A DNA stretch of 64,000 nucleotides from Hyaloraphidium curvatum SAG 235-1. Taxonomy: Eukaryota; Fungi; Monoblepharomycota. The DNA lies in the NCBI GenBank assembly GCA_025558095.1, contig JAIVFI010000027.1, positions 186,001 to 250,000 of the forward strand, given 5' to 3'. Positions 967 through 23,498 of this stretch are shown here, piece after piece. The translations under genes and the position numbers were made by a program. The stretch's first letter is position 1. Each line of letters opens with the position of its first letter. The notes beneath the pieces are model-generated. The model had not been told where the DNA came from. It saw only the letters and a program-made list of their open reading frames with translations, and did not search any database.

Positions 967-1186
967 TTTCTTTGGGAAGCTACCAACATGTGATACGATG
1001 ACGGACCGCCGATCCCGCCGGCCGCCGATCCGTCGATCCAAAATGCCCGCAATGGTTCATATTCGAGATATGGTACGCTTTAGAATGCTTCGGAATATCA
1101 GAGGGCGTGTCCCAGATTGTGGATGTACACGGTCTTATTGGCAATCAAGGCTACGAGTACAGCATGCTTCTGGTACATGCAGAGAG

Positions 1187-1873: not shown

Positions 1874-2200
1874 GGTTCTGTGTGCTCAGAGGGAGGGGAT
1901 GCAGACTGCTGTTTCGGCGACTCGGATTGCGGGTTCTGTAACGGCCGCCAACAGGGTGCTTTATACTCCTTCCGGAGGCGCAGCGCACAGCTTCTGAGGG
2001 GGTTCCGCCGCAGAAACCCCGGAAGGGGCTCCGCCACGCCGAGAACTCTACCCAACCCTCGTTTTTCGCAAGGTCCCCTACGCAGCGTCCCACGCCAACC
2101 CGAATGCTCGCTTGCGCCGTAGCTATCCAGATGCGCTACAATTAGAACCAAATCACTTCAAATCGATTAAACTATGGATCCATCGCCTGCATTGGGTCCG

Positions 2201-2953
2201 TCACGCCGCCTGCCCGATCTCCGCGAGGTACTCCGTCTTCCGACAGCATCCCACGCCCACTTGGACGTTCGAAAACTCGCTCCAGAATACCAGTTGCCTC
2301 TCCAGCTCCACCTCGCTCTCCGCAACAATCCCCTGGATCAATATCCTCCGCTCCGGCATCTCCCGCGCGACCGCCTCCCGCACGTTCGCCGTCATGCTTT
2401 CGAAAGTGCTGCTTGGTACCGCACCAGGATCCGTCATGACCAACGCGGAACACTTGCAGCCCAGCAAGGCGCAGTACATCCCCATGGCCGTCGGCCTGAC
2501 CGCCTCCACCTTCGGGAAGCGCCCCGCGGCGATCCACAGGGCCAGCGCGCCCTCGGTGCGGTCCACCAGGACGGCCTTCTCGACGCGCGAGAGCCGTGAG
2601 GACGAGTAGACGAGGAATTCCAGGGCCGCGAGGCCGGTTGCGTCCTCGGGAGCGAAGGGGCGCGAGAGGGCGTTCCAAATGCCGCGAGAGAGGACGAGTT
2701 CCCTCGGGCGGGTCTCCGAATCGCGCGGCAAGTCACGCAGATAGGTTTTAGCGCTGTCCAGGTTGCTCGGGGTGATTTCCAGGCAGCGGTGAAGCGCCGG
2801 TTCGGAGACGCGCCACAGGCGTCGGGAGGCGAGCAAGAGGCGCAGGAGGCTGGCGCGGAGCCTTAGCGCCCCGAAAGTCTCGGAGAGAAGCAGTAGAACT
2901 TCGTCCGGGAGGTCGAGCAGGCCGGAGAATGGAGGACAATGCATGGTTGGCAT
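2201..2953 (-). CDS. F-box-like protein
   Basis: N-terminal LLDLPDEVLLLL...LLLASRRLWRVSEPALHRCL is an F-box-like motif. ATG 2953 (or 2944). Confidence 0.6.
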   Translation of the reverse strand: MPTMHCPPFSGLLDLPDEVLLLLSETFGALRLRASLLRLLLASRRLWRVSEPALHRCLEITPSNLDSAKTYLRDLPRDSETRPRELVLSRGIWNALSRPFAPEDATGLAALEFLVYSSSRLSRVEKAVLVDRTEGALALWIAAGRFPKVEAVRPTAMGMYCALLGCKCSALVMTDPGAVPSSTFESMTANVREAVAREMPERRILIQGIVAESEVELERQLVFWSEFSNVQVGVGCCRKTEYLAEIGQAA

Positions 2954-3045
2954 GGTTAACCTTTTATGTGTCGGTGTGCTCGAGAAGCCACCACCCGTCA
3001 AACGCGGCTCGAAGCAAACATCCACGCGAGAGCACCCGCTGTATT

Positions 3046-5823
3046 TCACGGGCTGTGCCCGCCGTCCCTGCTCGAGAGGAGCGAATCTGCGATCCTGCCG
3101 GCCCCAAAAGGCCCTTTTGACAGTTCCTCGTCCACCTCCGACTCCCTGCCGAGATCAAGCGACGCGCTCGCCGACCCCAGCAGCTCCGCCGCATCCGCCT
3201 CGAGCCCCTCCACCAGCGCGGCCAGGTGCACCCCCAGCGCCGCGTCCACGCAGGCCATCAGCCCATTCCGCGAATCCAGCGCGGACCCGTCCCCGACCGC
3301 CCGCCGCACCGACGCCAGGATGGCCCTCGGCCCGTCCCCGGTGAACAGCGCGCGCGACGCCACCACGATCGCGTCCGTCCCCGGGTGCTTCTCCCTCTCC
3401 CCCGCATCTTCCGCCCCCCTCGCGGCGCGGGGCGGCCCGAAAAGCACCAGCTGCCTCCTCGAATCCAGCGCCCCCAGCACCGTGCCCAACCGGAGCACCG
3501 TCCCCGCCCCCGGATCGTCCGCGACGCCCGCCGCCCTCCCCCCCGCCGCGGCATCCGCCCACGCGCTGACGAGCGTCGCCGCCATCCGCAGCCCGGCGCC
3601 CATCCGCGCCACGAGCTCCGGGTTCCTGGGGCCGCGGAACCGCGGCTCGGCCTTGGAAAAGACGATGGCCTGCCCCGCCCTCCGCACGCACGCGTGCACC
3701 GAATCCGCCAGCCCGCCCGCCTCGGCCGCCGCCCGGTCCACCCCGTCCCCCGCGCCCCTCTCGACCCCCGCGCGGACGACCCGCATCCGGAGCACCGCGA
3801 ACGCCAGCGCGTGACCTGCAGCGGCCAGCGCCTGCCCCGCCGCGTCGGCGGCCAGCTTGGGTCCGACGAGGTGGCAGCTCAGCAGGCCCACCAGCGCGCC
3901 CAGGGCCGTCTGGGCAAAGGTCGAGCCGATGTAGGTCGCGTACGGCGGGGAGTTGGGGGGGTACAGGACGTACGAGGAGACGGCAAAGACGGCGACGATG
4001 CCCGCGCCGGCGCCGGCGCCGGGAAGGCGGGCGAGCGCGGCAAAGGGGGCGGCGAGCGCGGCGACGACGCCGAAGCTGGTCCATGCGGCGCGGTAGCCCC
4101 CCGAGGCGGCGAACCCCGCCCAGGAGATGAGCAGGCCCGGGAGCACGGCGGCCACGCGGATGAGGAAGGTCGCGTTGGCCTTGCCCAGCCAGACGGAGGA
4201 AAAGACGAAGGAGGCGCCGATGAAGGCGTTGATGAAGCTGAGGCTGGGGAGGGAGAAGGTCTGCGCGAGGACGAGGACAAAGGTGAAGGAGAGCACGGCG
4301 CGGGCGGCGGTGCGCGCCGATTCGTGCGAGAGGGCACGGCCGGCGATGACCAGGGGGGAGCGGGGGTCGGGCCCGGGGAGGGTGAATGAGAGCGGGGTCG
4401 GAGGGTCCAACGTGGGCGGCCGGCGCAGCGTCCCGAAGTTGGGCAGGCCGTTCCCGGCCGAACCGTTGCCCGTGGAGCCCGTGCCGTTCGTCCGGACCTC
4501 CTCCAAGGGCACACCTTTGTCGCCTTTCCCGCGCCGCCTGCCCATGCAGGCGCACCAGGATCGAGACCCGCCCGCGGCCGCCGTACGCGCGAGCTCCTGC
4601 GCTGCCGAAGCCGCCCAGGCCACGCCGGTGCTGAGCACCAGCAGGGTGCTGGCAAACACCACGCCGGCCTCGGAATCCGTCGCGTCGAACCCGTGCGCGC
4701 GAAGGGAGGCGACAGTTTGCGAGTCCATCTCGCGCACCGCGGAGGATACCTCGGCAGGTTCCGGGGAGGCCGGGTCGCCCGTCCGCCCGAGGATGGCGGA
4801 CCTCGCCGCCCGGAGGTTCATCCTGGCCGTGCGCAGGACCTCCTGCATCGCCCCCGCGACCTCGCCGAGCACCCACTTTTCCGCGCCCTCCCCACCCCGG
4901 TCGAGGGCCGCGACCGCCGCAGCCTGCATGCTCTCGACCTCGAGGAACTGCGCCGCCAGGAGCATCTGGTGCGCCGCGGGTCCCAGCGCCGCCAAGGGCC
5001 CGGGCACGAAGCGGGTTTCGAGGGCAACCATGGAGGCGGTCTCGAGGAGGGCGTCCATGGCGCGGCGGTCGGCGCCGAGGCGCGCGGCGGCCCCGTCGCG
5101 TTCGTCCTTCAGGACGGTGGGGTCCGCGGGCGGGCCGGAGGCGGCGGCGATGCGCGCCGCGCATTTGGCGAGGTTGGCGTCAATGGCGGCGGTGGCGTCG
5201 TCCAGCTGCTGCCGGAAGCGCGAGGCGTTCGAAGGCGTGCCGAGCAGCGGACCGACGAGCAGGCGCCAGAAGATGATGACGCCCACGGCGGCGGAGAGCG
5301 AGCGCAGCAGCGAGACGGGGAACTGCCCCATGGCGTCGAAGGGCGGCCTGAGCGAGAAGCCGACGGCGGTCATTGCGGCCGAGAGCACGAACGCGCCGGC
5401 GAACGAGGCGCCCCACACCGGCGGCACGGCGTTTGCGGCCACGGCCGACAGCGAGCCCGTGGCCAGCACCAGCATGGCGGCGGCGGGCGGGGCGGCCACA
5501 GCGAGGGCCATTCCCGCGAGCCCGAGCGCGGCGGCGACGGCGCCCGCCGCCAGCGTCGCGCCGCACAGGGCGAGAACGATTGCGGGCGAGTATGCGGTGC
5601 CGCGCGGCGAGAAGATCGACGCGGCGCACGCGAGCGGCAGGAGCACCGACGCCGCGCCGAATGCGCCGCGGAGGTCGTCGTACGTCCACAGCGCGAGGCC
5701 CGACGAGACGACGCACGCGTCGACGACCGCGAGGGCGAGCGCCGGCCGCGCCATCTCCACGCCGAGCACCGTCCGCGGCCGCCGCCGCGCGGGCGGGTCG
5801 AGCGGCGGCACGGCGGAGGACAT
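3046..5823 (-). CDS. Polytopic membrane protein, FUSC/ArAE/ALMT-like duplicated architecture
   Basis: Two blocks of 5-6 hydrophobic helices, each followed by a helical soluble domain (e.g. ...ALGALVGLLSCHLVGP..., FSKAEPRFRGP). Likely start MSSAVPP at 5823. Confidence 0.6.
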   Translation of the reverse strand: MSSAVPPLDPPARRRPRTVLGVEMARPALALAVVDACVVSSGLALWTYDDLRGAFGAASVLLPLACAASIFSPRGTAYSPAIVLALCGATLAAGAVAAALGLAGMALAVAAPPAAAMLVLATGSLSAVAANAVPPVWGASFAGAFVLSAAMTAVGFSLRPPFDAMGQFPVSLLRSLSAAVGVIIFWRLLVGPLLGTPSNASRFRQQLDDATAAIDANLAKCAARIAAASGPPADPTVLKDERDGAAARLGADRRAMDALLETASMVALETRFVPGPLAALGPAAHQMLLAAQFLEVESMQAAAVAALDRGGEGAEKWVLGEVAGAMQEVLRTARMNLRAARSAILGRTGDPASPEPAEVSSAVREMDSQTVASLRAHGFDATDSEAGVVFASTLLVLSTGVAWAASAAQELARTAAAGGSRSWCACMGRRRGKGDKGVPLEEVRTNGTGSTGNGSAGNGLPNFGTLRRPPTLDPPTPLSFTLPGPDPRSPLVIAGRALSHESARTAARAVLSFTFVLVLAQTFSLPSLSFINAFIGASFVFSSVWLGKANATFLIRVAAVLPGLLISWAGFAASGGYRAAWTSFGVVAALAAPFAALARLPGAGAGAGIVAVFAVSSYVLYPPNSPPYATYIGSTFAQTALGALVGLLSCHLVGPKLAADAAGQALAAAGHALAFAVLRMRVVRAGVERGAGDGVDRAAAEAGGLADSVHACVRRAGQAIVFSKAEPRFRGPRNPELVARMGAGLRMAATLVSAWADAAAGGRAAGVADDPGAGTVLRLGTVLGALDSRRQLVLFGPPRAARGAEDAGEREKHPGTDAIVVASRALFTGDGPRAILASVRRAVGDGSALDSRNGLMACVDAALGVHLAALVEGLEADAAELLGSASASLDLGRESEVDEELSKGPFGAGRIADSLLSSRDGGHSP

Positions 5824-5966
5824 GGGGCGTCCGGCGTCCGAATCTCCCGGGGCACTCGGGGCGGCGCAAAAGCGCGCCTCTTGGGAGGTCCCAGAACGAA
5901 GCCCCGACACAAATAGCTCCTAGTTCGCTCTGCTCTGGCGCTCTCTCCGCATCTCCGGCATTCGGC

Positions 5967-7080
5967 ATGGCCACCGAGATCATCGCCCTCACCCCCGGCA
6001 GCGGGCGCCGCCCGCCGCTGATCCACACCGTGCGCCTCGAGGCCAAGAGCGCCGGGGCCTGGATCCCCGTCCCGCTCCAGGACATCTCGCAGACGTCGCA
6101 GGACGGCAGCAGGGTCACCGCGTCCGTGGACGTCGTCACCCTGGGCAGCTTGATCCGCGGCGAGGACGGCGAGCCCGGGGAGGGTGCCCGAGAGGCCACG
6201 ATCAGGCTGCTCGCGTGCACAAAGGCCCAAGGGGACGGGGAGTGGGGCCAGGACGGCAGGGCGCGGGTGGTGACCAACGCCTTCGTGGACGGCCGCAAAC
6301 TCCCCCAGAGCTGGAAGGATCCCGGTGAGGAGGCCGTGATCGACTCTGTGCGTGCTCCTCCCCATCGCTCGTTGCTTGCATGCTGACCGTCGCCAGTACG
6401 AGGACCGCAAGGGCACGGAGAAGCCCCTCACGATCGGCTGGGTGGACTACCAGGAGCGCCAGCTGGACCCCGCGCATTACGACGCCGTGCGCAGGGTGTA
6501 CGGCGAGATGGGCACCATCAAGCTGCGCGTGAACGTGTGGAGGCGCGCGGGCGAGCGCATGGTGAAGGCCAGGAAGCCCGCCAAGAAGACCGCCGCCGCC
6601 AGGACGCCGCCCGCCGGCGATGCGCCCGCCGCCGCGCCGGACGCGAAGATGGACGCGGAGCCCCTGCGTGCCATGCGCTCCCGCGGCATCGTGCCCAAGA
6701 AGGGCATGAAGCACTCGCCCTACGCCAGCGCCAGGTACGTGCCGGACAGCTCTTTACCGCGCGGTCGCGCTGATCCCGCGTCTATCGCCAGGTTCGACGA
6801 CGGCGATTCCGCGGACGAGGAGCCCGCCGTCCCCGCCGGCGACGTTCCCGGCGCCGCGACCGAGCCGGAGCCCGCCGCGGACTCCCCTGCCGGGACCAAT
6901 CCCAACGCCGGACCGGACGGGCACGCTCCGCCCAAGGTCAAGGTCTCCGTGGGCTACACCAGCAACTGCCTGGCTTCGTTCGCCATCTACTACGGGCGGG
7001 AACCGCCGGCTCCGCGCATCAAGTTGGGGATGCCCCAGGGGGTGCAGGAGGTGGAGGGGGTGCTCGTGATCGAGGACTAG
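5967..7080 (+). CDS. Hypothetical protein, 2 exons
   Basis: ATG 5967. Phase-0 intron 6348-6396 (GTGCGT...GCTGAC...CAG) joins the end of ORF 5373..6386 to ORF 6352..7080. Confidence 0.7.
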
Positions 7081-7192
7081 TGCGTTCGTTATTGCGTTCC
7101 CGTTATATGTCAAATCAGCAGTGCACCGAATCAATACATGTGTGTGCCCGTCGTGTGGACGAATGCAAACACCATGCCATCGGTCCGTCAGG

Positions 7193-8227
7193 TCACTCTG
7201 CACTGGAAGACCCGCCACCAGAACCTTGATCCCGCTTGGCAGCGTTTCCCTTCCCTGGAGGCGCGCATTGTGCCTTGCGGCGGGGCCAGTCCTCCCGTTG
7301 GCACTCTGGGGAGCAGTAGAATGCCAGGGCGCAGCGCGAGCATCGCCGCAACTCCCGCTGCACGTCCCTCGACGTCTTGCCGCACTTGTGGCACCCCGAA
7401 AGCAGCGTCACGGGCAGGTCCGTCGAATCGGGCGAGCCGTCTTTCTTCATGTACGCGAGCGCGGCCTTGATGACGCCCACCGTGCAGTTCGCGCAGTACG
7501 GGAACGCAAAGATGGTCACGGAGGCCACCCCTCCGGTTCGTGGAACTGGAATGGCTGGAAGTCCTTTGCTTTCCCGCCGCACCGCACGCAATCCGGTTTC
7601 AGGGAAAGGAAGTGCTTGACAGCGAGCTTGAGCCCCTCCGAGTCTCGCGCGATTTTGGAGAGCTCCTCGGGCTGGTCGATGAGCGCGGCGTCGACCTGCA
7701 GCCGAGCGCGGCGCTCGTCCGGGTGGAAACCCGGGGGAGATCCCTTCTGCAGGGAGGAGCAGAACCTGCTAGAGGTCGAGCGGATGCCTGGCACTGCCGT
7801 GCACGGGCTCCGGCCTCCGCGCATCGCCGATCCGCCTCTTGCCCTCCTTGGTCAGATTGGCCTTTGCCTTTGTTTGGCACGCCTCGGATCCGCAGACGAG
7901 CTGCAGCTCCGTGATCGTGATCCCGTGCGGGTTGGTCACCCCCGGGTGATCCCCTTGGGCGACGGTCACGGCCGGCTTCCTACACTGAAAGCATCTTCTC
8001 GAGGACGGCCCCTCGGAGGCCATGTACCTTTTGACCTCAATAGTGGCAAACTCGTCGGCGATGTCCAAGATCAGTCGTTCCACGGTGGTGTCGCGGAGCC
8101 GGGAGACAGGGACGGGAAGCGGGCGCGAGGTCCAGCGATTCTGACGGGTGGCTCCATCGAGGATGTTGAGGTACATGCGGCCCGGCTGCGCATTGGAGAG
8201 GTCGCGCATTGGCTCGGTGGCCGCCAT
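7193..8227 (-). CDS. MYND-type zinc finger protein with an apparent frameshift (pseudogene or sequence error)
   Basis: C-terminal CHKC...CSRC...YCSPECQREDW..K..C is a MYND finger, with two upstream CxxC..C pairs. A 58-nt GTGCAC..CTGCAG intron joins segments 1 and 2. Segments 2 and 3 join only by a 1-nt shift at the C-run 7528-7531. Confidence 0.65.
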
Positions 8228-8313
8228 CTCCAGGGGACCCGGCGGGGCGATCAGTTGGCGGGACCCAGTAAACAAACCGTAAACAATCTCGTACCGTTGA
8301 AATCCTCTAGAAA

Positions 8314-10099
8314 ATGCCGTACTACTCGAAGAAATGGGATCCCTCGCGGCCGGACACGGGCATCGACGGCGACGAAGTGCTGAATCCCTCGGTCCTGCGC
8401 CTGAACCGCGCCGTGGCCAGGTTCAAGGCCCGCGAGATTGCCGCGGACCCTGCGCCAAAGTCCTCGGCTGCCGCGCTCCGCCTGCTTGCCGTCGACAAGC
8501 TCAAGCAGGCGGCGGCGAAGCTCAAGGCCGGCGACTGGGAGCCGACGTCGGACATTGACGCTTCGCCGCTGGCGCTCCTCACCGACTCGTTCCTGATCGA
8601 CGACAAGGCTTACGGGATCCACGTAGACCTCATGCGCGATCTGGACACGATCCTGCGGAAGGAGCGCGTGTTCCGCAACGCTCCCGAATACGGGAGCTCG
8701 GCCTCGAGCGCGGCGCGCGCCGTCAGGGGCGTGCTCGAGGCCGAAGGATGGGACAAGGCGCGGATGGCGGCCGACCACTTTGTGCGGAAGGAAGTCTGCG
8801 CCGCAATGATCTCCAAGGTGTCGCGGGACCTTGCCGGCGGGATCACGCGGCTGCAGAACGCGGTCGAGTTTGTCGACAAGTTCGCCGGCAAGGTCGATCC
8901 CGCGGCGCTGGCTCAGGAGGGTGGACGGGCCCTGCAGCCTCATTTAATTTTGGCGACAAAGGGCCTCCTGCTCGACTACGTGATCGAGCGGCCTGGGGAC
9001 GGACTACCAGGTGGCCCGCAAGGTGCTCGAGGTTGGCACCGTTCTGGCAAAGGACGTGCTCGCCTCGACCTCCAGCGGCATCTCGTCCTCCATCCTCGAC
9101 GATCCGGCGCTCCCCGCTTTCCACTTCTTGCCCCGCGCGAATGCCTACACCGCCCTTGCGGCGTTCCACTTTCGGCGCGCCTACATGTCGGGCTCGCCCG
9201 CGGGAACGGCGGGCAAGGTCGCCTTTTCGGACCACAGCTCCTTCCTTGCCGCGGCCGACAACTACCTGCTTGCGGCGTCGAACTTGCCCGACGACGACCC
9301 CAGCAAGCCGCACCACCTCTACAAGGCTGTGGACCAATACATCCACGCGGGATGGATCCCTTACGGCGCACTGAACCGGCTACAGCAGCTCGCCGAAAAG
9401 CACGAGGCTACCGCGACGATGATGTACGAAAGCGGCCGCGGAGACTTTGAGATGATCAACGCCAGCTTCAAGGCCCTCATGGCCCGTTATGGGCCTCTCA
9501 CAGAGCAGAACCGCGAAAAGGCAAAACCGCCCGCCGGTACACCTGGATCTCTCGCCCGTGGCACGGATGGAGCCGCATAAGCTGGACATGGCGCGGGGCG
9601 TGTCGGCGGAACCGAGGCCCGAAAAGGAGCTTGCCAACCTCCGCAAGGGGCTCGAGGACCTGGAAGCCGGATTTCCCGCCCTCGTGGAGCGCGCAAAGCT
9701 GGCCTCGGCTCCGGTCGTGCCCGTCGCGGCCGTCGGCGGCACGGCTTCAGGGTCCGACCCCGCCGCGGCCGCGGCCCGCCAGAAGCTCATCCGCTGCGCA
9801 AAGTGCAACAAGATCGACACCGACAAGAGCAATTTCAAGCGCTGCTCGCGTTGTCGGTCAGTTCATTACTGCAGCGAGAAATGCCAGAAGGACCACTGGA
9901 AGCTGCACAAGATGGCGTGTTTCACGGATTCGGACCGGCCGACTACCCCTATGGCTTACATCCCCAGTTCTGGCGAGGAGGCGATCGCAATCGGAGGGCC
10001 GGGTGGGGTGAACAGCGTGATCGATCTCTACAAGGCTGGAATCGGGGTGGAACCGAAGCCGCAGGAGGAGGCAGCACCGTGGTTATGTATGGTAAATGA
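8314..10099 (+). CDS. MYND-type zinc finger protein split over three frames (3' end uncertain)
   Basis: ORFs 8314.., 9011.. and 9489.. continue one another. MYND finger CAKC...CSRCRSVHYCSEKCQKDHWKLHKMAC at ~9794-9920. Frame changes at ~8985-9010 and ~9520-9537. Confidence 0.6.
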
Positions 10100-11695: not shown

Positions 11696-12940
11696 TCAGG
11701 GGCGCATGGCGTTCTCCACGTCGCGCACGACGTTGGGATCCGCAAAATCCACCGAGAACCTCCCCTGGTAGCCCTTCCTGGCCCTCTGCACGGCATCCAG
11801 GTACGCCTGCGAGTAGAAATAGCCCTTGCCCCTCGACGATGTCGGGAAGGCCTGCTCCTGCACCGGAAGCCAGGCCACGCGGCGGCCGTCAAGGCGGACA
11901 TGGCCGAGCTGCCACGCCCAGGCAACGGCCGCGAATCCGTACTTCGCGATCAGGGGCGCAAGGTCGCGTTCAGAAGCTTCGAGGTAGCCCTGTGCGAGAC
12001 CGACATCAGAGTGCGAAGGCCAGGCGGCCAAACAACCGCCCACCTGCATCGAAGGCGACAAGTACGAGAATCCACGGTTATGGTACAGGACGGCGTGGTG
12101 CCAGCAGTCGGGCGCGTTTGCGAGCATGTCCCTCCCTCCCCATGCGGTCAGCGCCGTGAGCGCGTTGCCAAACTGCCGCGCGATCCCCAAGCCCGGGTGC
12201 GTCTGGCCGGGCAGGCGGGGGCGGGCGGAGGAGAAGGTCCTCCTGGGGTCGCGGAGCTCGAGCCATTCGATCATGAAGACGGCAGCCGGCGTCTTGAACG
12301 CCGTGCAGATGTGCTCGATGTCCTTGTCGATTGTTTCGGGCGGCAGGTCCCATAGCGGAGCCAAGTTGCCCTGCGGCGGGGCTGCTCCGTCGCGGATGCG
12401 CAACAACTCCTGGAAACCCTTCCAGTCATGCACGCTCTTGTCCTGCAGCCGGACGCAGAGGTCCGCCAGAAAGTCGGTCGTGGGCGCCGAGGCCTCCCGG
12501 ACCGTCAGACGGTGCACGAATCCGTCCGTGGGGTGAAAATCGCACGTGAGGTCCTCCAGGTCGATGCCATGCCGAGACAGCGGAGCCGCGAACCCGAAAT
12601 CCGCGGCAATCTTCTTCAAAAAGTCCGCCGAATACGCTCTGAGGAACTTTGACGGCCTTTCCTCGCCCGACTGCAGCGCAAGCTCAATCTCCGCAAGCAG
12701 GTCCTTATCGGCCACAACAGTCCTCGAAGCGCCGGTGATTTCGCGCCGCGCCCGGGCCTGCATGTACGGCGGGAGCTCTTGGTGGCTCCGCAGCGCGCCG
12801 TCGAGCCGTTTGAGCCCGTCGCTGAGCGCTTGAGCGATCCGCGCGATTGTCCCTGGAGCGGAGTCGCGGGCAGGGTCCTCGGCGCACAACCCGTCCAGGG
12901 CACGTCGCGGGTCGGGCGGCGGGGTGCCGGGAGTCTCCAT
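11696..12940 (-). CDS. Conserved hypothetical protein (IEWLELRDP...RPRLPGQTHPGLG...P..WHHAVLY), one in-frame intron
   Basis: Long ORF with an in-frame intron near 11990-12045 (MQ|GTGGGC...CAG|GY). The motif resembles the C-terminal domain of some bacterial deacetylase-family proteins (from recall, unverified). Confidence 0.7.
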   Translation of the reverse strand: METPGTPPPDPRRALDGLCAEDPARDSAPGTIARIAQALSDGLKRLDGALRSHQELPPYMQARARREITGASRTVVADKDLLAEIELALQSGEERPSKFLRAYSADFLKKIAADFGFAAPLSRHGIDLEDLTCDFHPTDGFVHRLTVREASAPTTDFLADLCVRLQDKSVHDWKGFQELLRIRDGAAPPQGNLAPLWDLPPETIDKDIEHICTAFKTPAAVFMIEWLELRDPRRTFSSARPRLPGQTHPGLGIARQFGNALTALTAWGGRDMLANAPDCWHHAVLYHNRGFSYLSPSMQVGGCLAAWPSHSDVGLAQGYLEASERDLAPLIAKYGFAAVAWAWQLGHVRLDGRRVAWLPVQEQAFPTSSRGKGYFYSQAYLDAVQRARKGYQGRFSVDFADPNVVRDVENAMRP

Positions 12941-13720: not shown

Positions 13721-14515
13721 TCAGCCCGGCCGCAGATTGAGCATGTGCTCGTCGTACGTTACCACGGCCTCGAATCCCAGCCGTCGGTACACCGCGATCG
13801 CCGCTGTATTGTCCACGCTGACGTTGAGCCCCACGTAGCAGACCTTTTCCAGGAGCGATCGGCACAGCGCCGCGACGGCCGCGGTGGCGAGACCCTTGCC
13901 GCGCGCCTCGGGCCGCGTCGCGATGTTGCCCAGGGCTGCCACACCGTACTCGGGCGAGTAAACGTGGATGCCCGCAACGCTTGCCAGGGTACCGCCGCGG
14001 CGAACGCCAAAGTACTCGCCCGTGTCGAGCATCCGCGCGTCGAACCAGTTGCCGTCGTAGGCAGCCGAGTAGAGCTCCTCCAGCTCCTTGCAATCGTCCG
14101 GCCCGAGGCGCACCGCATCGGAAATGTCTACGCGGTCGAGCTGCGAGGGATCCGCAAGACGCATCTTGACATAGGCTCCGTGCGGCTCCTCCGCATAGTC
14201 GGCGAGGGCGTCCAGCACGCCGGGGCTCAGATGCGCGTACATTCTTCGCGGCAACAGATGCAACACGTCCTTCAGCAGCAGCTTCATTCTCTCAGGGTCC
14301 TTCGACAGGGCCAGGAGAACGGGGAGCGCGGTATTCGACGCTCCGGCGTACAGCAACGCGACTTCTAGCAGCTCCTCGCCCTCTTCGAGCCCAAACCACA
14401 CCGTGTACGACCAGAAAAAGTCGTCCAAATCGCCAATCTGGTAGTCATAGAGCACCGGGTCGCGCCGGAGGAAGGCCGCGAGCCTCTCACGGTCGTGGAC
14501 CACGACCGCGCGCAT
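13721..14515 (-). CDS. GNAT acetyltransferase (FR47-like C-terminal domain; bacterial-type, intronless)
   Basis: LGNIATRPEARGKGLA (motif A) and LNVSVDNTAAIAVYRRLGF (motif B). Start MRAVVVHD at 14515. Confidence 0.9.
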   Translation of the reverse strand: MRAVVVHDRERLAAFLRRDPVLYDYQIGDLDDFFWSYTVWFGLEEGEELLEVALLYAGASNTALPVLLALSKDPERMKLLLKDVLHLLPRRMYAHLSPGVLDALADYAEEPHGAYVKMRLADPSQLDRVDISDAVRLGPDDCKELEELYSAAYDGNWFDARMLDTGEYFGVRRGGTLASVAGIHVYSPEYGVAALGNIATRPEARGKGLATAAVAALCRSLLEKVCYVGLNVSVDNTAAIAVYRRLGFEAVVTYDEHMLNLRPG

Positions 14516-14788
14516 CGCGCGTCGGCAGCGCGTCTGTTCCTTCCGTGGGCCCGCGAACTGTCTTGCGTTCGTCACAGTGCAGCAAGTCGTTCTTCATGTG
14601 TCGCTATGGACGTCTCCGGCCATGTGGGAGATTCGCCGCAGGAGCCGGCTCGTGAAAAGATTCGACGCAGAATACAACGGCTTCGCCACCGCGCTCAAGC
14701 TCCCAAAACACCACGTCCTTGAAAATCTTCTGTCCAAATCCATGCGGCAGCCTTCGAATCATCGAGTTCCCCATCCAGATTCGCGAAA

Positions 14789-15163
14789 TCACTGAACTCT
14801 CCAGAACTCCAGCTGCATGACAGCTCCAGGTCCCGGCTCGACATGGTGCTTCAGCTTTGGGGGTGTGACCGCAGCTTCTCCGGCCCGCACCGGTACAGAA
14901 ACGTCTCCGCCGCCATCAATGCCTTCGAATACAAAGTCCAAGCTGCCCTCCTGGCACACGAGCCTGCCCCACACGCCCGCCGCCGTTGAGTGGGAACGCT
15001 TGAAGCCTTGCGGCATCGACTCGCCGGTCCACACCGGCATGGTCTTGTAGCAGACGACACCGGGCGGTAGCGAGTAAGGAGGCGGGCCGCAGGTGCCCTG
15101 GTCGGCAGAGGTCGGAGTGGCTTCGGCGCGACCGGAACCCGTCGAGCCAGCGTCGCCTTGCAT
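14789..15163 (-). CDS. DUF1971 / TehB N-terminal-like cupin protein
   Basis: YKTMPVWTGESMPQGFKRSHSTAAGVWGRLVCQEGSL...PP...HHVEP...LEFW matches the DUF1971 pattern. Intronless. Confidence 0.8.
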   Translation of the reverse strand: MQGDAGSTGSGRAEATPTSADQGTCGPPPYSLPPGVVCYKTMPVWTGESMPQGFKRSHSTAAGVWGRLVCQEGSLDFVFEGIDGGGDVSVPVRAGEAAVTPPKLKHHVEPGPGAVMQLEFWRVQ

Positions 15164-15337
15164 GACGGCACGACGGAAGAAACGCGTCTGAATTCAGGCT
15201 GCGTGGAGCGCTGCACGCGTCCGCTGCATGAGCTAGTAGTAGCTGAGCGCTCTGCGAGTGTCGATACGCGGAGTGAGTGGACGCGTCGCGCCGCTTGCAA
15301 ACTCCGTTGCTGTGTCTCCCACTCCCCACTTGCAGCA

Positions 15338-16579
15338 ATGTCGATCCGCCCGGGCCGTACGGTGATCGCCAAGACCGAGGAGGTCGTCTACGGCCAGCCG
15401 GCCGCGTCGGCGGTGCCCGAGCTTGCGCGCCGGCGCGGCGCCAGGCGCGTGCTGGTCATGGCGTCGGGCACCCTCAATCGCACCACCGACGCCGTCAAAC
15501 GCGTCGTCGAGGCGCTGGGTGACATGTACGCCGCGACCTTCGATACGGTTCCCGCGCACACGCCCCGCTCGGCCGTCATTGCGGCCGCCGCGCTCGCCCG
15601 CGAGTTCGGCATTGACACCATCGTGACTGTCGGGGGAGGCTCAGTGACGGACGCGGCCAAGGCCGTCGCGCTCTGTCTCTCCAACGACGTGACCGACGTC
15701 GACGCGATGGACCCCCTCCTCGCCGGCCCGGTCAAGCCTCCTACCGTTCGCTCGATCGCCGTGCCCACCACGCTCTCCGCCGGCGAGTTTTCGGCCATCG
15801 CGGGCGTGACCAACGAGAAGAAGCGCGCCAAGGAGCTCTTCAACCACCCGCTCTGCGCCCCGGCCGCCGTGGTGCTCGACGCCGAGATCACCCTGCACAC
15901 GCCGCAGTGGCTGTTTATCAGCACCGGCATCCGCGCCGTCGATCACTGCGTCGAAGGATATTGCTCCTCCGCACCGTCGCCTTACGCCGACGGCCAAGCT
16001 CTGCACGCTTTGAAGCTGCTTTCTTCCGGCCTGCTGAAGGTCACCCAGAACCCGCAGGACCTGGACGCGCGGCTCCAGTGCCTGATCGGATGCTGGCTGT
16101 CCATGACTGGCGTCGCGACGGGGGTGCCCATGGGTTGCAGCCACGGCATTGGTGCGTGTCCTGCGAGATCGATCTGTCGCAGTTGTGCTGATCGTGAGCT
16201 GCCACTGACAGGATACGTCCTCGGAGGCGCGTTCGACGTCCCGCATGGGCACACCTCCTGCGTCATGCTCCCCGCCGTCATGAAGTGGAACAAGCCCGCC
16301 AACGCCGCCCGCCAGGCCGACATCGTCGCCGCTCTCGGCGGCAAGCCGGGCGACGACGCCGGGGACCTGCTGCACAAGCTGATCGCCGCGCTGGGGATGC
16401 CGAGGAGCCTCAAGGCCGTCGGCGTGGGGAAGGACAAGTTCGCGTTCGTGGCGATGCGGGCGATGAAGACCAACTGGGTGCCCAGGAACCCGAGGAAGGT
16501 GGAGTCGCAGGCGCAGGTGCTGGAGATTCTCGAGATGGTTGCGGATGATGATGCTTGGCCGCCGGCGGCGAAGATCTAG
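15338..16579 (+). CDS. Iron-containing alcohol dehydrogenase (maleylacetate reductase-like)
   Basis: VGGGSVTDAAK, VPTTLSAGE, TGIRAVDHCVE, GCSHGIGY...VPHG. One in-frame 60-nt intron at 16152-16211. Confidence 0.92.
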   Translation: MSIRPGRTVIAKTEEVVYGQPAASAVPELARRRGARRVLVMASGTLNRTTDAVKRVVEALGDMYAATFDTVPAHTPRSAVIAAAALAREFGIDTIVTVGGGSVTDAAKAVALCLSNDVTDVDAMDPLLAGPVKPPTVRSIAVPTTLSAGEFSAIAGVTNEKKRAKELFNHPLCAPAAVVLDAEITLHTPQWLFISTGIRAVDHCVEGYCSSAPSPYADGQALHALKLLSSGLLKVTQNPQDLDARLQCLIGCWLSMTGVATGVPMGCSHGIGACPARSICRSCADRELPLTGYVLGGAFDVPHGHTSCVMLPAVMKWNKPANAARQADIVAALGGKPGDDAGDLLHKLIAALGMPRSLKAVGVGKDKFAFVAMRAMKTNWVPRNPRKVESQAQVLEILEMVADDDAWPPAAKI

Positions 16580-16656
16580 GTGAAGGCACGTTTGCATCTG
16601 CGTTTCAAGTTTGAATCCGCGGCGTGACCGCTCAAATCTTCGCACATCACGCAACA

Positions 16657-17346
16657 ATGCGGACGCGTTTCCGTCGTCTGCTGCTTTGCGTCCTGCTTTT
16701 CATTCCTCTCTCTCTTACGACGCGGGCCCATGTACCGGAAGAGCAACATCCGGTTGCCGGAGACGACGCGTCCCACTTCCTCACCCTCTGGCTTCGGCCT
16801 GCGTCCCCAGACCTCGACGAGTTCCTGTACCGGATCATTGCCAGCGAATGTCGATCGCTGGTGGGCGCGTCGGCGCCCTTCACTCCCCACGTGACGCTCT
16901 TCTCACTCTCGGACGAGGCATTTCGGGACACGCCCGTCGACGACGCGATTGAGACGCTCCGGAAAGCCATTCACGCGTGGCGCGCCCGCATTGGCCGCAC
17001 GGACCCCGGACCATTGGAAATCGTCTCCCTCGGCCCACGTGCCGGCCCCACGGACGACTTTTGGGAATGCGTGATGCTGCTCTTCACGCAATCTCCGGAC
17101 CTCGACGAGCTCCGCGCGGCGGTGCAGGAGTCCTTCGGCGCGGCACGCACACCATTTCAGCCACATTTATCGCTCGTGTATGGGGACTTCACTGCGGAAA
17201 AGCGGGACGCGATCGCGGCTGAGTTGGGTCGGACGGTCGGGAACGATCTTTCGGGGCCCGTGGCCTTCGACAGAGTGGAGCTCTGGCGATGCGGGATTGA
17301 GAAGAGGACTGAGGATTGGATCAAGCTAGGCGAGGTGTTGCTATAG
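16657..17346 (+). CDS. 2H phosphoesterase (cyclic phosphodiesterase/CPDase-like) with possible signal peptide
   Basis: Two HxT/S motifs (FTPHVTL, FQPHLSLVYG), plus LWLRP and a C-terminal W..LGEV. Hydrophobic N-terminus. Confidence 0.85.
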   Translation: MRTRFRRLLLCVLLFIPLSLTTRAHVPEEQHPVAGDDASHFLTLWLRPASPDLDEFLYRIIASECRSLVGASAPFTPHVTLFSLSDEAFRDTPVDDAIETLRKAIHAWRARIGRTDPGPLEIVSLGPRAGPTDDFWECVMLLFTQSPDLDELRAAVQESFGAARTPFQPHLSLVYGDFTAEKRDAIAAELGRTVGNDLSGPVAFDRVELWRCGIEKRTEDWIKLGEVLL

Positions 17347-17444
17347 ACCTTCTTGCCTCCTCCTTTCTTGTCGCAAGCAACGCCACCGCGAGGTCCCTTG
17401 CCCTTTGCCCGCCTGCGCCTGCCCACCCCCCCACGCCGAACGCG

Positions 17445-18444
17445 ATGTCGCTCACCAACGAGCCCTTCAACATCTTCGCCCCCATCGGCGAGGTCCGGCA
17501 GACGGTCGTTCTGCCCATCCCGATGCCACCTGCCCCTGCGGCGCGGCCCCCGCCGAAGCTGGATCCCGAAGTCATCCGGCGGTACCGGGAGGACGGGGTG
17601 GCCGTCCTTCGAGGTGCGATCGACAAACCTTGGATAGACTTTCTTCGGGCTATCGTGGAGAACGCCATGGCGACGAGCCAGGACGGTGGGAGACACCGGC
17701 ACGCAATGCCATTTTGGCTCACCACGGCGAACAGCGAACCTCGGGGCGAACTACACAAAGGAAGGCGGGCCTGGCAAGTTCTATCACGAAATCGATGTTT
17801 GGCGCCGCCTGGCTCCGGCCATGGAGTGGATTCGCGGCGGACCGATGGGCGAGCTGGCTGCCAAGCTCATGGGGAGCAAGTACTCGTGCTTCCTCTACGA
17901 CCAGCTCTTCGTGAAGGAACCCAAGACGGAAGACGAAACGCCCTGGCACCAGGACCGCCCGTACTGGGCAGTCACCGGCGACATGGTGATCTCGTTCTGG
18001 ATTCCCCTGGATCCCGTCGACGCCAAGACTTGCGTCCAATACGTCCGCGGCTCGCACCGCTGGCAGGAGCACAACCCCCGCACCTTCCGCCCCGGGAACG
18101 CCCCGTACCGTGCCGGACTCCCTCTCCTCCCGGACCTGGACTCGCCCGAGGAGCAGAAGAAGCACGAGTTTCTGTCTTGGGACATGGAGCCCGGCGACGT
18201 GATCGTGTTCAACGCGATGACCGTTCACGGCAGCAAGGGCAACCTCAGGTCCGACACCAGGAGGCGCGCGTGGGCGTTCAGGTTCGTGGGCGAGGACCAC
18301 GGATTCTGCGATCAGCCTGGCCGGCAGTGGGGCTGGCCGGTGACGGACATGTGGAAGGAGGGCTACAAGGCCGGCAGCAAGATTGTCGGGCACCGAGATC
18401 ATCCTGTGGTCTACGAGGAGAAGGAAGGCGGGGCCAAGCTGTAG
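17445..18444 (+). CDS. Phytanoyl-CoA dioxygenase (PhyH) family Fe(II)/2OG oxygenase
   Basis: YREDGVAVLRG, TPWHQD, FWIPLD, GSH, MEPGDVIVF...HGS..N...RRA. Intron 17686-17734. Confidence 0.92.
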
Positions 18445-18577
18445 TCGAGTGCGCGGCTGGCTCGTTGTTGGTACAAGTAGCGTGTGTGAATGTCGTTCAA
18501 TCAAATGTGATCTTTGCTATGTACAGGCTCGCTTTCAAGTTTATCCAATTGCCAAGAACGCAGAGCTACCAGCTTGC

Positions 18578-19458
18578 TCAGCACCCTGGCGTCGGAACGG
18601 GCACATCCGGGTTCAGGAGCTTCCAGCCCCTGGAGCACCAGTGGTTGGGGTCGGAGTAGCCGGAAGTCTTCCAAATCCGGTAGTGGAGAGCCCCGCACTC
18701 AAAGTAGGGGGATTTGTCGGTCCCGCTCGCGGCCAGCTTCTCGCAGCAGGATTTCGGGACCCAGATGCAGTCCCAAGAGTTGGTGGCCATGCAGCCGATC
18801 TGCCCGTATTGCGTGCGCTTCACTGGAGTCCAAGCGTCCTTGCCGCTCTCGTCCTGCAGGCAACCCCACGACGAGCCGGGATAGCTGGGGCCGTCTTTGG
18901 GCGCAACGCAAGTAGCGTAAGGGCGCGTGTCGACCGGCAGACGAGGGTAGCTGACGTGATCCGAAGGGCAATTCGGGTTCGGCAGGGGAATGCCACCTCC
19001 GTCCAAGTTGCCGGTGCACGTGGTCGGCGCCGGGTAGCCCAGAATGTAGACATCGTGAACGGTCTTGCACCACCCATCTGTGGGGTCATAGGGGCACGCG
19101 ATGGTCCCGGTAGGCTCGACCGTGCGCGGCCGAGGCCTGGTGCAGGCGTCGTCCAAGAAGAATGTGCATTGCCCCTTCGATCCGGCGCAGCCCAGCTGGT
19201 AGAACTGGAAAGTGCCGAAGAAGAACGCCGCGTCAGAGCACGAGTACATGCACTTCTTTTCGTTCTGTAGGCCTGGACGTCACGGAGTTCACCTGGACAG
19301 CGTCGCGACTCGCTCACCGGATACGAGGTTCGGCGGTGCCGCGAGAAAGAGCCCAACGATGCGCCGTGGGGGCTCGCTGGAGTGTCTACCAGAGGCATAG
19401 CAAAGGTTTCGGTCGCCGCCAGGCAAAGGGCGACGAGGGTGGCGAGAGATGCTCTCAT
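18578..19458 (-). CDS. Secreted cysteine/tryptophan-rich protein, 2 exons
   Basis: Signal peptide MRASLATLVALCLAA. An intron GTGAGC..CTACAG (~19266-19317) joins it in frame to ORF 18578..19249, which is rich in Cys. Confidence 0.8.
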
Positions 19459-20024
19459 TGTTTGGTCGAAGACACGATTGTTTGTCACGGACGGAGCGAT
19501 GGAAAGCAGGTTCGTTGGAGAAACTGAATGCGATGCAGAGTCACGGGACGCAGTCTTATAGTGAGTCGGGGCAGCGCCACGCTCCTGTTTCGGCGCAAGG
19601 GTCCGAACGATCCGCAGTTGTTCGAGCCTCGGAATCGTGGGGTCCTTTGACTCAGACCAGGGTGGCGCAGGCCCTGTCCCCCTTCTGCTGGAGTCTCGTA
19701 AAAAGTTGAGGAGGACGAGAACCTTCTTTCCCTGACTCTGCTACATCAGCGTCGAACCCCGGACCGGGCTGGGTGACTTGGCGTGATGGAATTCCTTGTG
19801 CGAGCATCCTGTCCAGCGGACAAAGGTCGGTATAGAATCAGCGGCCTGTACTTCAATAGCAATAGATCCAGCCCGAGGCCTTCTTTGGCAAGAAACACGA
19901 AGATTTGGGGAGCGAGCCTGCGCGCGTGTCCGGCTGCCGCGTGCGCCGATCCGCAGCGATCCGCAGTCGCCCCCGCTCGATTTCGCTGTTGCGGACCGCG
20001 CCGTCTGCTTCGGACTCGTCAACG

Positions 20025-20305
20025 ATGCTCTGACTATTGTTCTGCGGTGAGCAACCCCGGGGCCGTTCGCGATGCAAGGCCTCTGACCCTCCCCAGGGAT
20101 CGCCTTCGTCGCCGAAAAGGTGTCGAACAAGGTGTCCCGCTCCCGCGCGCAGGCCAAGGCGTGCAGCGGCTCCAAGAAACCCGCCATGGTCACCCTTCCT
20201 GCCCCGCCGAAACCGCGGTCGGCGAGTCTGGACGGCGTCGAACCTCTTCCGGCCTACTCTCTCCAACCAAGGGCCGGAGAAGTTGCGGCTTTGGCTCGGG
20301 CTTGA
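20025..20305 (+). CDS. Candidate 76-aa selenoprotein (MLULLFCGIAFVAEKVSNKVSR...LPAY...), 2 exons, in-frame TGA at 20031-20033
   Basis: ATG 20025 with A at -3; exon 1 20025-20046; canonical 50-nt intron 20047-20096 (GTGAGC/CTGAC/CAG); exon 2 20097-20305 in frame with ORF 20120..20305. A SECIS-like element starts 24 nt after the stop. Confidence 0.7.
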
Positions 20306-20328
20306 GTTTTCGTACGGCCGAGGATAGA

Positions 20329-20400
20329 GCAACGCGCCGCGTCATGATCCGCGCCCGGAAACCTGGGCGGGCTGCGGGGAATCTCCTTGCGACGTGTAGC
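20329..20400 (+). promoter_or_regulatory. Eukaryotic SECIS-like element (type I-like)
   Basis: Pattern ATGA(20344-47)-N11-AA(20359-60)-N18-GA(20379-80). Helix II is CCGC/GCGG plus GCCCG/CGGGC. Helix I pairs 20329-20340 with 20389-20400 at 10/12 positions, with an internal loop between the helices. Folded by eye. Confidence 0.72.
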
Positions 20401-20477
20401 TCGTACCCCTGCCTGTTGTGACGCGAATCGACCCCCTTTTCTGCTCAAAGTCTCCTCCTGTTTGGCGTGATTCTCAT

Positions 20478-22169
20478 CTATGGCTCAGACTCAAACGCTC
20501 CACGGCCATGTCTATGACCTCGCGCGCCAGGACAACGCACCTCCGGACGTTCGTCAGGTCGTGCGGGGAAATCGTGCCCGAGGTAGCTGCGGAGCGCGAA
20601 GCTTGTGGCTGGCAAAGGCAGCCGGTCAAGAGAGGCGAGACGTGGAAGCTCAACAAAGCCGACCTTTGCGAGGAACGCCTCGAGCTCGTTGCGCCAGGCG
20701 CCGCACCAGGATATGACGAGCTCCTTCGCACTTCTATCCAGGCTCTCGATCCAGCCATCGACGGTCACGGGATCCTCGTTTTCTTCGGCCCTGGCCTGCA
20801 GCAATCGCCTCCGGGCAAACTCCAGGAGCTTGTCGTGAGCTCCGCGTGGATGCACGAAGAGGTAGTCCCGCTCCTGCTCGTTGGGCTCCGGGCCGTCGTC
20901 CAAGCCAGCTGGCAACGGCCAGATGCGTACCCGCTCCCCTCCCATCTCATCGTCCTGTTCCCAGACCTCGATGTATGCGCGGTCCGGTCTTTCGGGGTCG
21001 TCCGCGCGGCCAACGAACGGGACAAAACCCCATTCGCAGAATCCCATCACGCTTCCCACGTGGCCGTACCAGTTGAAAACTTGCTGCCCGGCGGCCACGG
21101 CTCCAGGGACGGCGAGGTGATAGCAGCCTGCATGGGGACCCGACGGATGGTAGGTCACCTGTAAATGGGGTGCGGAAGGCGCGGGCAGATGGTTGAGGAA
21201 GTCAGCGCCCGGAACGAGAGCAAAGCTGATGTTGGCATGGTGCGAGGGAAGATTCAGGGAGAATATGCGGGTGTTGACTGAAAGCCAAGCCCAAATGAAA
21301 GAGTCCCAAGGCAAGGCTCTGCCGACATGGCGTGCGCGCTTTCCGGGCCGAGGTCGCGGGCGTTTGTTCGGCGGCCCTTCCGTGGCGTCCTCCGCCAGCC
21401 CGAGCATGGCCGAGCCTTCGACGTCCACCAGAAGGGATTCGAACGAGGGAATGGTTGACGCCAACTCTCCCGCAAGTCGAGAACACATTCGCCAATCCGA
21501 CGCAATGGCTCGTGCCATACTGTCGCGCTTTCGCGCCAGCCTGACGAGCGGATGGTCGTCTCCGGCGGCGTTGATGCTGTTCAGATCTGCAGAGACAACG
21601 CACGAAGGAACACTTAACAATAGAGCGCACCGCTCGTCAGCCTTCTCTGCACCGGCCGGCAGCAGAGGCGAAGATGACCACGACGCAGGAACGCCGGAAT
21701 GGTCTTTTGGCAGGGAGTCGATGTACGGCTTCCACTTTGAACGTTCGCCGAGCGACGCTTCGTAGCAAAGGAAAAGAGCAAGAGCCTGGTGTTCCGACAG
21801 CGCAGGCTCAAAGTCGGTCATTCCCCACGACTCGGCCGCCTTTTGCGCCGTGATCACGAAAGCCCAGGGCACACGCAGCACGCATTCGCCGGGCGCGAGG
21901 GCGCGTTCGGCAACGACGCCGCGCAGAGTCCCTCCGCCTGGCAGCTCAACTATCGCCGGGCGCAGGGGAGAACCCGGAAACGTCCTGAGGAAAGCGCCGA
22001 GCGCGGCCGAGAACTCGGCGTCCGTAGTGGGCACGTTGAGCAGCGTCGAAGAAAGGGCGTCCGAGGAGCTCGACGCGTCCGAACCGTCCATGTCCGACGC
22101 GTCCTCTTCGGCCTCAGGTGAGCCGCTCTCTTCCTCATCTTCGGCGAAAGCGGCGACGTGCGGCTCCAT
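20478..22169 (-). CDS. SET domain protein lysine methyltransferase (Rubisco LSMT/Rkm-like)
   Basis: LRGVVA...VLRVP, SKWKPYIDSLP, FIWAWLSVNTR, ALVPGADFLNH, GQQVFNWYG...WGFV. Possible in-frame intron(s); 3' exon structure uncertain. Confidence 0.88.
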   Translation of the reverse strand: MEPHVAAFAEDEEESGSPEAEEDASDMDGSDASSSSDALSSTLLNVPTTDAEFSAALGAFLRTFPGSPLRPAIVELPGGGTLRGVVAERALAPGECVLRVPWAFVITAQKAAESWGMTDFEPALSEHQALALFLCYEASLGERSKWKPYIDSLPKDHSGVPASWSSSPLLPAGAEKADERCALLLSVPSCVVSADLNSINAAGDDHPLVRLARKRDSMARAIASDWRMCSRLAGELASTIPSFESLLVDVEGSAMLGLAEDATEGPPNKRPRPRPGKRARHVGRALPWDSFIWAWLSVNTRIFSLNLPSHHANISFALVPGADFLNHLPAPSAPHLQVTYHPSGPHAGCYHLAVPGAVAAGQQVFNWYGHVGSVMGFCEWGFVPFVGRADDPERPDRAYIEVWEQDDEMGGERVRIWPLPAGLDDGPEPNEQERDYLFVHPRGAHDKLLEFARRRLLQARAEENEDPVTVDGWIESLDRSAKELVISWCGAWRNELEAFLAKVGFVELPRLASLDRLPLPATSFALRSYLGHDFPARPDERPEVRCPGARGHRHGRGAFESEP

Positions 22170-22336
22170 GATTCGGTACGAGAACGCGTCGCGGGCAGAA
22201 CGGGACGCGGGGACCTTTCACTCACTTTTCAGATCCCCCTTTTCGCGGTCACCTTCAAAGATCCAACTGAAAGGACCAAAGAGAGAAAGTGACATCTTTT
22301 CAAAGACAATGTAATGACTCCATCAACGATTCGCGG

Positions 22337-23219
22337 CTAAATGTTCTCGGAGAGCCTGAAATCGTCGCTTCTTTGCAGCGTTGCTTCGAGGTGATGCGTG
22401 AGCTGAGGCGTGGTCGTCGTCGCCATCGCCATGGTGTAGTGCAGCGACGGCGGGTCGTCTGGACCGGCACCAGGAATCAGCTTGTATACCCTGTGGTTGG
22501 CAGTCGCGTGAGATGGAATCAATTACGGTCAAGTCAAGCAGTCGCGCACCGTTTCGTTGCCGTCACAAACGGAGGCCGGGCCGTCGAAGTCCTCGCTGCG
22601 CCCTTTTCGTCCTTCATCTCTATGGTGAAGCTCTTGGCCTGCGGATCCAGCCGGCCTTCCTCGACCGAAGCGAGGCCTGTCAAAAATCAAGAGATCAGGA
22701 GGGCGACTTGGCCGAGTGTCGACTGCGCACGGACCATTCGGCTGCGCCAGAACGAGCTCCACCTTCGTGCCCCCGTCCGGAGTCGGTCCAAGCACCCTCA
22801 AGAAGCCCGACTCTGCGTGGAAAGGTGCGTTGTTCTTCCCAGGATTCCAGGTGTTCTGACTGGGGCCGATGAGCTCAGAATGCCATCTCGTTTCTTGCGA
22901 ATCCTCACGTGTAGAAGAGATACTTGGCTCCCGGATAGCCCCAAAAGGTTATCTGCTCGACGTAGCTCCGGGGAGGGTCAGCTGCGTCTTCCGCGACACG
23001 GAGTCTCGCCGGATCCCACTCAAAGTCCTTGATAGTCGGGTAAACGCCCTTGCCGTTGCCGCGCCATGTTCCGATGAGCCAGGAAGCGGGCGCTTCGGGG
23101 CTGTAGAGCGCCGGGTTGGCGTGTGTGTGCAGGACTGGGAGCGCCGGTCGCGGAGTCGATTCAGTCGATTCCCGACTCCGGTGGGCGTCCGTGGCGCGGC
23201 GTCACCAACGTGGAGACAT
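22337..23219 (-). CDS. Nitrobindin (THAP4-like/DUF1794 heme-binding beta-barrel), 6 exons
   Basis: Hand-spliced: MSPLLHTHANP..WLIGTWRGNGKGVYPTIKDF.YVEQITF..FHAESGFLR..VELVLAQPNGLASVEEG..ARTSTARPPFV..LHYTMAMATTTTPQLTHHLEATLQR, including the C-terminal heme-ligand His. Not captured as one ORF. Confidence 0.9.
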
Positions 23220-23498
23220 ATGAGAGTCGTTGCTCCCGCGCGGGAGCTTTCAAAGGCTGACCGATGGGCGATTGTTGCCGGGGCCGCGGCTCGGAGGTGA
23301 ATCAGTACTTGGCGCTTCGACTCGCTCGATCCGTCTGACAAAGCCGGTTCCTTCTCGGCCCGGCCTTCGACGGATGCAATCCGGACAGAAGCGAAATATG
23401 ACAAGATCGAATGCTAATTAGACAGATTCCGACGTTCAGGAAACGAAATTCCAACAGATTACGTCCAGCTTCCCAAGGCAAGCGCTTGCGGCCTTCCA

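Follow-up and report, generated by a model that had tools for sequence, protein, structure and literature searches.

A probable selenoprotein gene of the fungus Hyaloraphidium curvatum, without detected homologue and with a UGA at codon 3

We analysed a stretch of 64,000 nucleotides of the genome of Hyaloraphidium curvatum SAG 235-1 (contig JAIVFI010000027.1, positions 186,001 to 250,000; hereafter the window), in which a short, spliced plus-strand frame with an in-frame TGA lies between two genes of the opposite strand. The features of the locus, in window coordinates, are as follows.

18578-19458, minus strand: divergent neighbour encoding a secreted, Cys-rich protein
20022-20027, plus strand: start codon (ATG at 20025) with A at -3, in a context like that of the starts of the neighbouring genes
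20025-20046, plus strand: coding part of exon 1, seven codons and 1 nt (M-L-UGA-L-L-F-C), followed by a phase-1 intron
20031-20033, plus strand: in-frame TGA, the proposed selenocysteine (Sec) codon, residue 3; identical in genome contigs C27 and C50 and in an RNA-type contig
20047-20096, plus strand: intron of 50 nt, GT..AG, with a CTGAC branch site; spliced in the RNA-type contig
20097-20305, plus strand: coding part of exon 2 to the stop TGA at 20303-20305, with Met38 at 20186; layout of a basic helix followed by a Pro-rich disordered tail
20246-20257, plus strand: LPAY, a PY-type motif (residues 58-61) with WW binding as its putative function
20330-20396, plus strand: SECIS element (helix I, core, helix II, apical AAA), recognized by pattern, fold and a covariance model from the same genome
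20478-22169, minus strand: SET-domain gene, KAI9012287.1, 450 aa

Each of the two neighbours matches an H. curvatum protein at NCBI at 100%. Both are on the minus strand, in agreement with the original prediction that no plus-strand neighbour could own the SECIS-like element. The model of KAI9012287.1 skips internal stretches that an RNA contig (20664-22300) covers unspliced, and it probably contains false introns; in addition, RNA shows partial retention of a true intron of this gene near 20609-20663. Homologues of the secreted Cys-rich protein were found in H. curvatum only, where there are two paralogues. The sequence GATCCGCAG occurs three times (at 19609, 19948 and 19958) in the 570-nt divergent promoter and six times in the whole window, and is possibly a regulatory motif.

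The spliced frame comprises 76 codons, from ATG 20025 to the stop at 20303-20305, and no other in-frame ATG lies between the upstream stop and Met38. A public RNA-type contig skips exactly the 50 nt of 20047-20096 (GT..AG), one of four introns skipped by contigs of this type in the region, and agrees with the genome over 19318-20045 and 20096-20610 with no differing letters and no gaps, TGA included. The label of RNA given to this public run is a guess. Its contigs are unstranded, and the one in question, which covers 20096-20610, also spans the divergent secreted-protein gene and meets the 3' end of the SET gene; it therefore gives no measure of expression level or transcript ends. The RNA evidence shows the modelled gene to be transcribed and its intron to be removed. 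The 76-aa spliced ORF with UGA at codon 3 and an intron at 20047-20096, as originally proposed, was recovered at the same coordinates, with both the junction and the TGA in the RNA-type contig. The TGA of contig C50 is not independent support, because C50 duplicates the region at 99.7%. The duplication extends over positions 1-9500 of this 25.7-kb contig, which align with window positions 13916-23423 at 99.7% with 14 gaps, and C50 is likely an unmerged haplotig or a poorly polished duplicate. The proposed Sec codon sits within CTGAC (20030-20034), the pentamer that also forms the branch site of the intron that follows; the RNA-type contigs, which drop rare forms, gave no sign of splicing through this upstream CTGAC.

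To score coding potential, we used a 3-periodic model for which 53 kb of H. curvatum coding sequence served as training set. The part of exon 2 before Met38 scored 9.4 bits/90 nt in the UGA frame, close to the median of real coding sequences (9.6) and attained in 0.6% of windows taken off-frame or antisense, and -18.6 and -13.8 bits/90 nt in the two other frames. Sequence before Met38 therefore appears to be translated, which would require reading through the UGA or starting at a near-cognate codon. After Met38 the UGA frame scored -7.3 bits/90 nt, a codon use like that of non-coding DNA in the C-terminal half, which speaks against the tail being under strong constraint. The two exons had been predicted to form one coherent hydrophobic helix only in the frame containing the UGA. 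The frame preference stands, with coding bias before Met38 in that frame only; the hydrophobic stretch, at 13 residues, is short for a true transmembrane helix.

The H. curvatum assembly (31.93 Mb in 55 contigs) encodes Sec machinery. Genome searches returned tRNA-Sec (78 bits), SepSecS (199 bits), eEFSec domain 4, a weak PSTK match (E 6e-4) and an SPS gene that has both a TGA in frame and a SECIS of its own. Absence of the machinery, which would have spoken against Sec decoding, is thereby dismissed. The genome holds at least seven other genes with UGA and SECIS, on contigs C2, C30, C3 (two), C41, C22 and C15. SPS (NCBIfam), a DI-like protein and SelK (both Pfam) and thioredoxin reductase (TrxR, with Gly-Cys-UGA-Gly) are profile-supported, and the SelW-, SelH- and AhpC/PRXL2-like genes were recognized by eye only. 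SelK and SelW are absent from the fungal list of a 2018 preprint (bioRxiv 10.1101/314781).

The element behind the candidate frame contains AUGA (20344-20347), N11, AAA (20359-20361), N17 and GA (20379-20380), so that the predicted same-strand SECIS-like element, with its helices, was found at 20330-20396. Its core, UGAU/GGAA, fits the published UGAN/KGAW (PMC3753652). Helix II comprises 9-10 bp at -17.3 kcal/mol, helix I is 8-9 bp long, and the minimum free energy fold adds a 4-bp stem. The overall fold is no stabler than that of shuffled sequences (z -0.9 and -1.1) and is not unusual for the local G+C. The core lies 38 nt behind the stop, in agreement with the short spacing in other selenoprotein genes of the genome, and 261 nt from the UGA on the spliced mRNA, a distance larger than the 51-nt minimum between UGA and SECIS (PMC3737529).

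Scanning of the locus and the genome with the Rfam SECIS_1 model, a check suggested with the original prediction, did not report the candidate element, which did not reach the cut-off. We therefore describe it relative to the SECIS elements of its own genome, for which the SPS element and five hits of the Rfam model, behind the UGA-containing DI-like, SelK, SelW-, SelH- and AhpC/PRXL2-like genes, served as reference. These six read C-AUGA-N12/13-AAA...GA and the candidate reads C-AUGA-N11-AAA-N17-GA; with N11 and no mini-helix, it is shorter than all of them. A covariance model (R2) was built from these six, with the candidate and the TrxR SECIS held out. It gave the candidate 21.0 bits (E 0.009), the top match in the window, and the held-out TrxR SECIS 21.9 bits; unrelated sites in the genome scored 19-21 bits. 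The candidate thus scores like a true SECIS, with a score that reaches significance for the locus but not for the genome as a whole. An earlier model from two sequences (R1) was overfitted, missing the candidate and SelH and barely finding SPS, and was set aside, as was the plain AUGA-AA-GA pattern, which with 723 matches was uninformative.

A tighter scan combined the species-consensus pattern, which was chosen with knowledge of the candidate and is therefore somewhat optimistic, with a requirement for helix II in register at -15 kcal/mol or lower. Genome-wide, 34 pattern matches were reduced to five SECIS elements of known type, the candidate and one hairpin within RecQ helicase coding sequence; a near miss lay antisense to coding sequence, and the SelH and TrxR elements narrowly failed the fold filter. 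By pattern and fold across the genome, the candidate is the only passing 3' UTR element that is not behind a selenoprotein of known type. The RecQ hairpin (contig C38:159540) is strong, at -22.9 kcal/mol, and was taken as chance. With a looser descriptor, the candidate was the sole match in 128 kb of window, and 1-4 comparable matches arose per 6 Mb of simulated Markov background. From about 2 chance cases per 64 Mb of real genome for the tight pattern and 0.2-0.7 per Mb in simulation, a given short 3' UTR would carry such an element by chance with a probability of about 1e-5 to 1e-4.

Searches for relatives of the protein were made exon by exon, which reduced their sensitivity, since a conserved N-terminal motif would likely span the junction. 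For exon 2, a word-indexed protein search gave no real homologue, a phmmer search against 1.8 billion representatives matched only two repeat proteins (spurious), the ESM Atlas gave scores of 0.76-0.82 and no real relative, a metagenome scan gave no homologue, and Pfam, NCBIfam and the PDB gave no match. A pattern search with exon 1 returned 15 matches and no paralogue. In the organism's own genome there was no paralogue either, the hits besides the C50 duplicate being off-frame chance matches. No homologue with Cys or UGA was found in these exon-by-exon searches of protein collections and genome, and the search for orthologues with a conserved TGA and SECIS, or for Cys homologues, that had been suggested as a check came back empty on the same terms. 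Two sets of fungal contigs (Logan SRR26194948 and ENA ERZ28593542; 52% G+C) are partly syntenic with the region; the shared arrangements are SET, MOSC and Fe-ADH genes, and a SET gene adjoining a gene of the 11696-12940 family. Neither has an orthologue or a SECIS beside the SET gene. Two further loci lay at too great a distance to serve in this comparison. These two relatives are distant (SET protein identity 41-44%), and this distance, together with the exon-wise searching, gives the blank result little weight. Some small fungal proteins presumably share the layout of a hydrophobic start, AEK, a basic run and LPxY. A literature search for Hyaloraphidium and selenoprotein found no description of the gene.

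The predicted protein starts with 13 hydrophobic residues (mean Kyte-Doolittle value 2.75 over 13 residues and 1.41 over 19), followed by a net charge of +6 over residues 14-40. Sec and Cys occupy residues 3, 7 and 30, giving a U-x3-C spacing and no CxxU or UxxC motif. AlphaFold, applied to exon 2 alone, modelled a helix over exon-2 residues 2-22 and then coil, at low confidence (pTM 0.15) and with no beta core. There is neither a thioredoxin fold nor a CxxU motif to speak for a redox role.

Comparison with known selenoproteins places the candidate apart. Early-diverging fungi such as Gonapodya prolifera, a relative of the monoblepharid H. curvatum, have SPS, AhpC, MsrA, DI-like, TR, SelenoU and SelenoH selenoproteins; the survey that listed them kept only known or predicted oxidoreductases of known families and discarded its novel-family candidates (bioRxiv 10.1101/314781). 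The candidate shares with the selenoproteins of this sister lineage (Monoblepharidomycetes) the decoding system and a SECIS close behind the stop, but differs in having no homologue, no thioredoxin fold and Sec at residue 3. It resembles SelenoK and SelenoS in being small, with a membrane-associated N-terminal part (putative in the candidate), a basic and Pro-rich disordered tail, one Sec and no thioredoxin fold; in these, however, Sec is near the C-terminus, whereas the candidate has its UGA at codon 3. It does not match PF10961 (SelK_SelG), a profile that hits the genome's separate, real SelK. SelW of Euplotes (PMC3737529) is of similar size, about 8 kDa, and likewise carries its Sec close to the N-terminus, at position 9, but SelW has a thioredoxin-like CxxU, whereas the candidate has U-x3-C in a hydrophobic helix and no predicted beta core. 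With no Pfam, NCBIfam or PDB match, it does not belong to the thioredoxin-fold families (SelW/H/T, AhpC, DI-like). MSP and the Ostreococcus hypothetical selenoproteins 1-2 (PMC2375036) are also lineage-restricted and of unknown function, and MSP is hydrophobic; but MSP is a multi-pass membrane protein of about 180-230 aa with an internal GSUCWP and the Ostreococcus proteins have a C-terminal CUG (PMC2375036), and comparison by eye with the published alignment revealed no resemblance of the candidate to any of them. The candidate would thus work like a standard eukaryotic selenoprotein gene while standing outside the thioredoxin-fold, SelK/SelS and MSP families, and the original claim that it is unlike known selenoprotein families held against profiles and family features alike.

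We consider it fairly likely that the locus is a previously undescribed, orphan selenoprotein gene of non-thioredoxin type with Sec at residue 3. This reading is based on the splice and the TGA in RNA, the bias of the UGA frame, a SECIS of the type found in this genome and the decoding machinery. An alternative would be a recently broken ordinary gene, in which a nonsense change struck codon 3 of a transcribed orphan and a SECIS look-alike stands behind it by chance. The searches that found no conservation, the overlap of the SECIS score with genome-wide noise (19-21 bits) and the weak codon bias of the C-terminal half would all suit such a gene, but an element of this quality is expected by chance in only about 1e-5 to 1e-4 of short 3' UTRs, and the chance cases that we found sit in or antisense to coding sequence; we regard a broken gene as unlikely. 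There is a small chance, too, that AUG-CUC-UGA is a minimal uORF followed by re-initiation or leaky scanning at the near-cognate UUG codon 5 or at Met38, with the SECIS as a relic or as a read-through modulator, a switch without functional Sec. Start-proximal stops are generally known to permit re-initiation, an in-frame TTG lies two codons downstream, and Sec so near the start is without precedent in PMC3737529, where the earliest natural case is position 9. However, a start at Met38 would leave the best coding-biased stretch untranslated, ATG 20025 has a typical start context, and an intact SECIS in a Sec-using genome most simply means Sec use.

That the true ORF is an overlapping plus-strand frame from ATG 19786 (211 aa unspliced, 163 aa spliced), with an incidental hairpin, is very unlikely. 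The exact 211-aa sequence is in NCBI/nr, where its contig has the length of C50, and the RNA contig is continuous through 19786, but the unspliced model reads through the 50-nt intron that RNA removes, the frame scores -8.9 bits/90 nt, like off-frame sequence, and it has no convincing family match, forming a cluster of one. We rejected the 211-aa ORF because it crosses the spliced intron and has this score. That the UGA is spliced out in another transcript form, or reflects an assembly error, is most improbable. CTGAC at 20030-20034 does resemble a branch consensus and the duplicate contig C50 has indel differences nearby, yet the TGA is present in both genome contigs and in the RNA contig, there is no donor between ATG and TGA, and no joint occurs over 19318-20045 in contigs that drop rare forms.

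If the locus is a selenoprotein gene, established eukaryotic Sec biology suggests that SBP2 would bind the SECIS kink-turn and that eEFSec with Sec-tRNA would decode UGA3 as Sec, yielding the 76-aa protein. A shortage of Sec-tRNA would make the ribosome halt after Met-Leu, so that output would track selenium supply. Because the UGA adjoins the AUG and lies 13 nt before the sole junction, the mRNA should escape junction-dependent decay. A point against Sec at residue 3 is that insertion may be position-dependent, and in PMC3737529 no natural case lies nearer the N-terminus than position 9. In the protein, the 13-residue hydrophobic N-terminus and the +6 basic helix would tether it to a membrane; Sec3 and Cys7 (i, i+4), on one face of a helix, may form a lipid-proximal redox, acylation or metal site; and the tail would present LPAY to a WW ligase of the Rsp5/Nedd4 type. 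Granted a real gene, we put forward this combination of tether, lipid-proximal U-x3-C site and ligase contact only tentatively. The wider proposal, that it founds a non-oxidoreductase family with Sec3 in a membrane anchor, U-x3-C, a PY-motif tail acting as ubiquitin-ligase adaptor and a start-proximal UGA as an all-or-none selenium sensor, is speculative and rather doubtful.

New families of eukaryotic selenoproteins are rare. Homology-based finders such as Seblastian require a Cys homologue, so that an orphan like this candidate is invisible to them. If real, the gene would show Sec decoding two codons past initiation, a place at which stopping is nearly free of cost, and would offer a small, testable case of Sec outside the thioredoxin fold.
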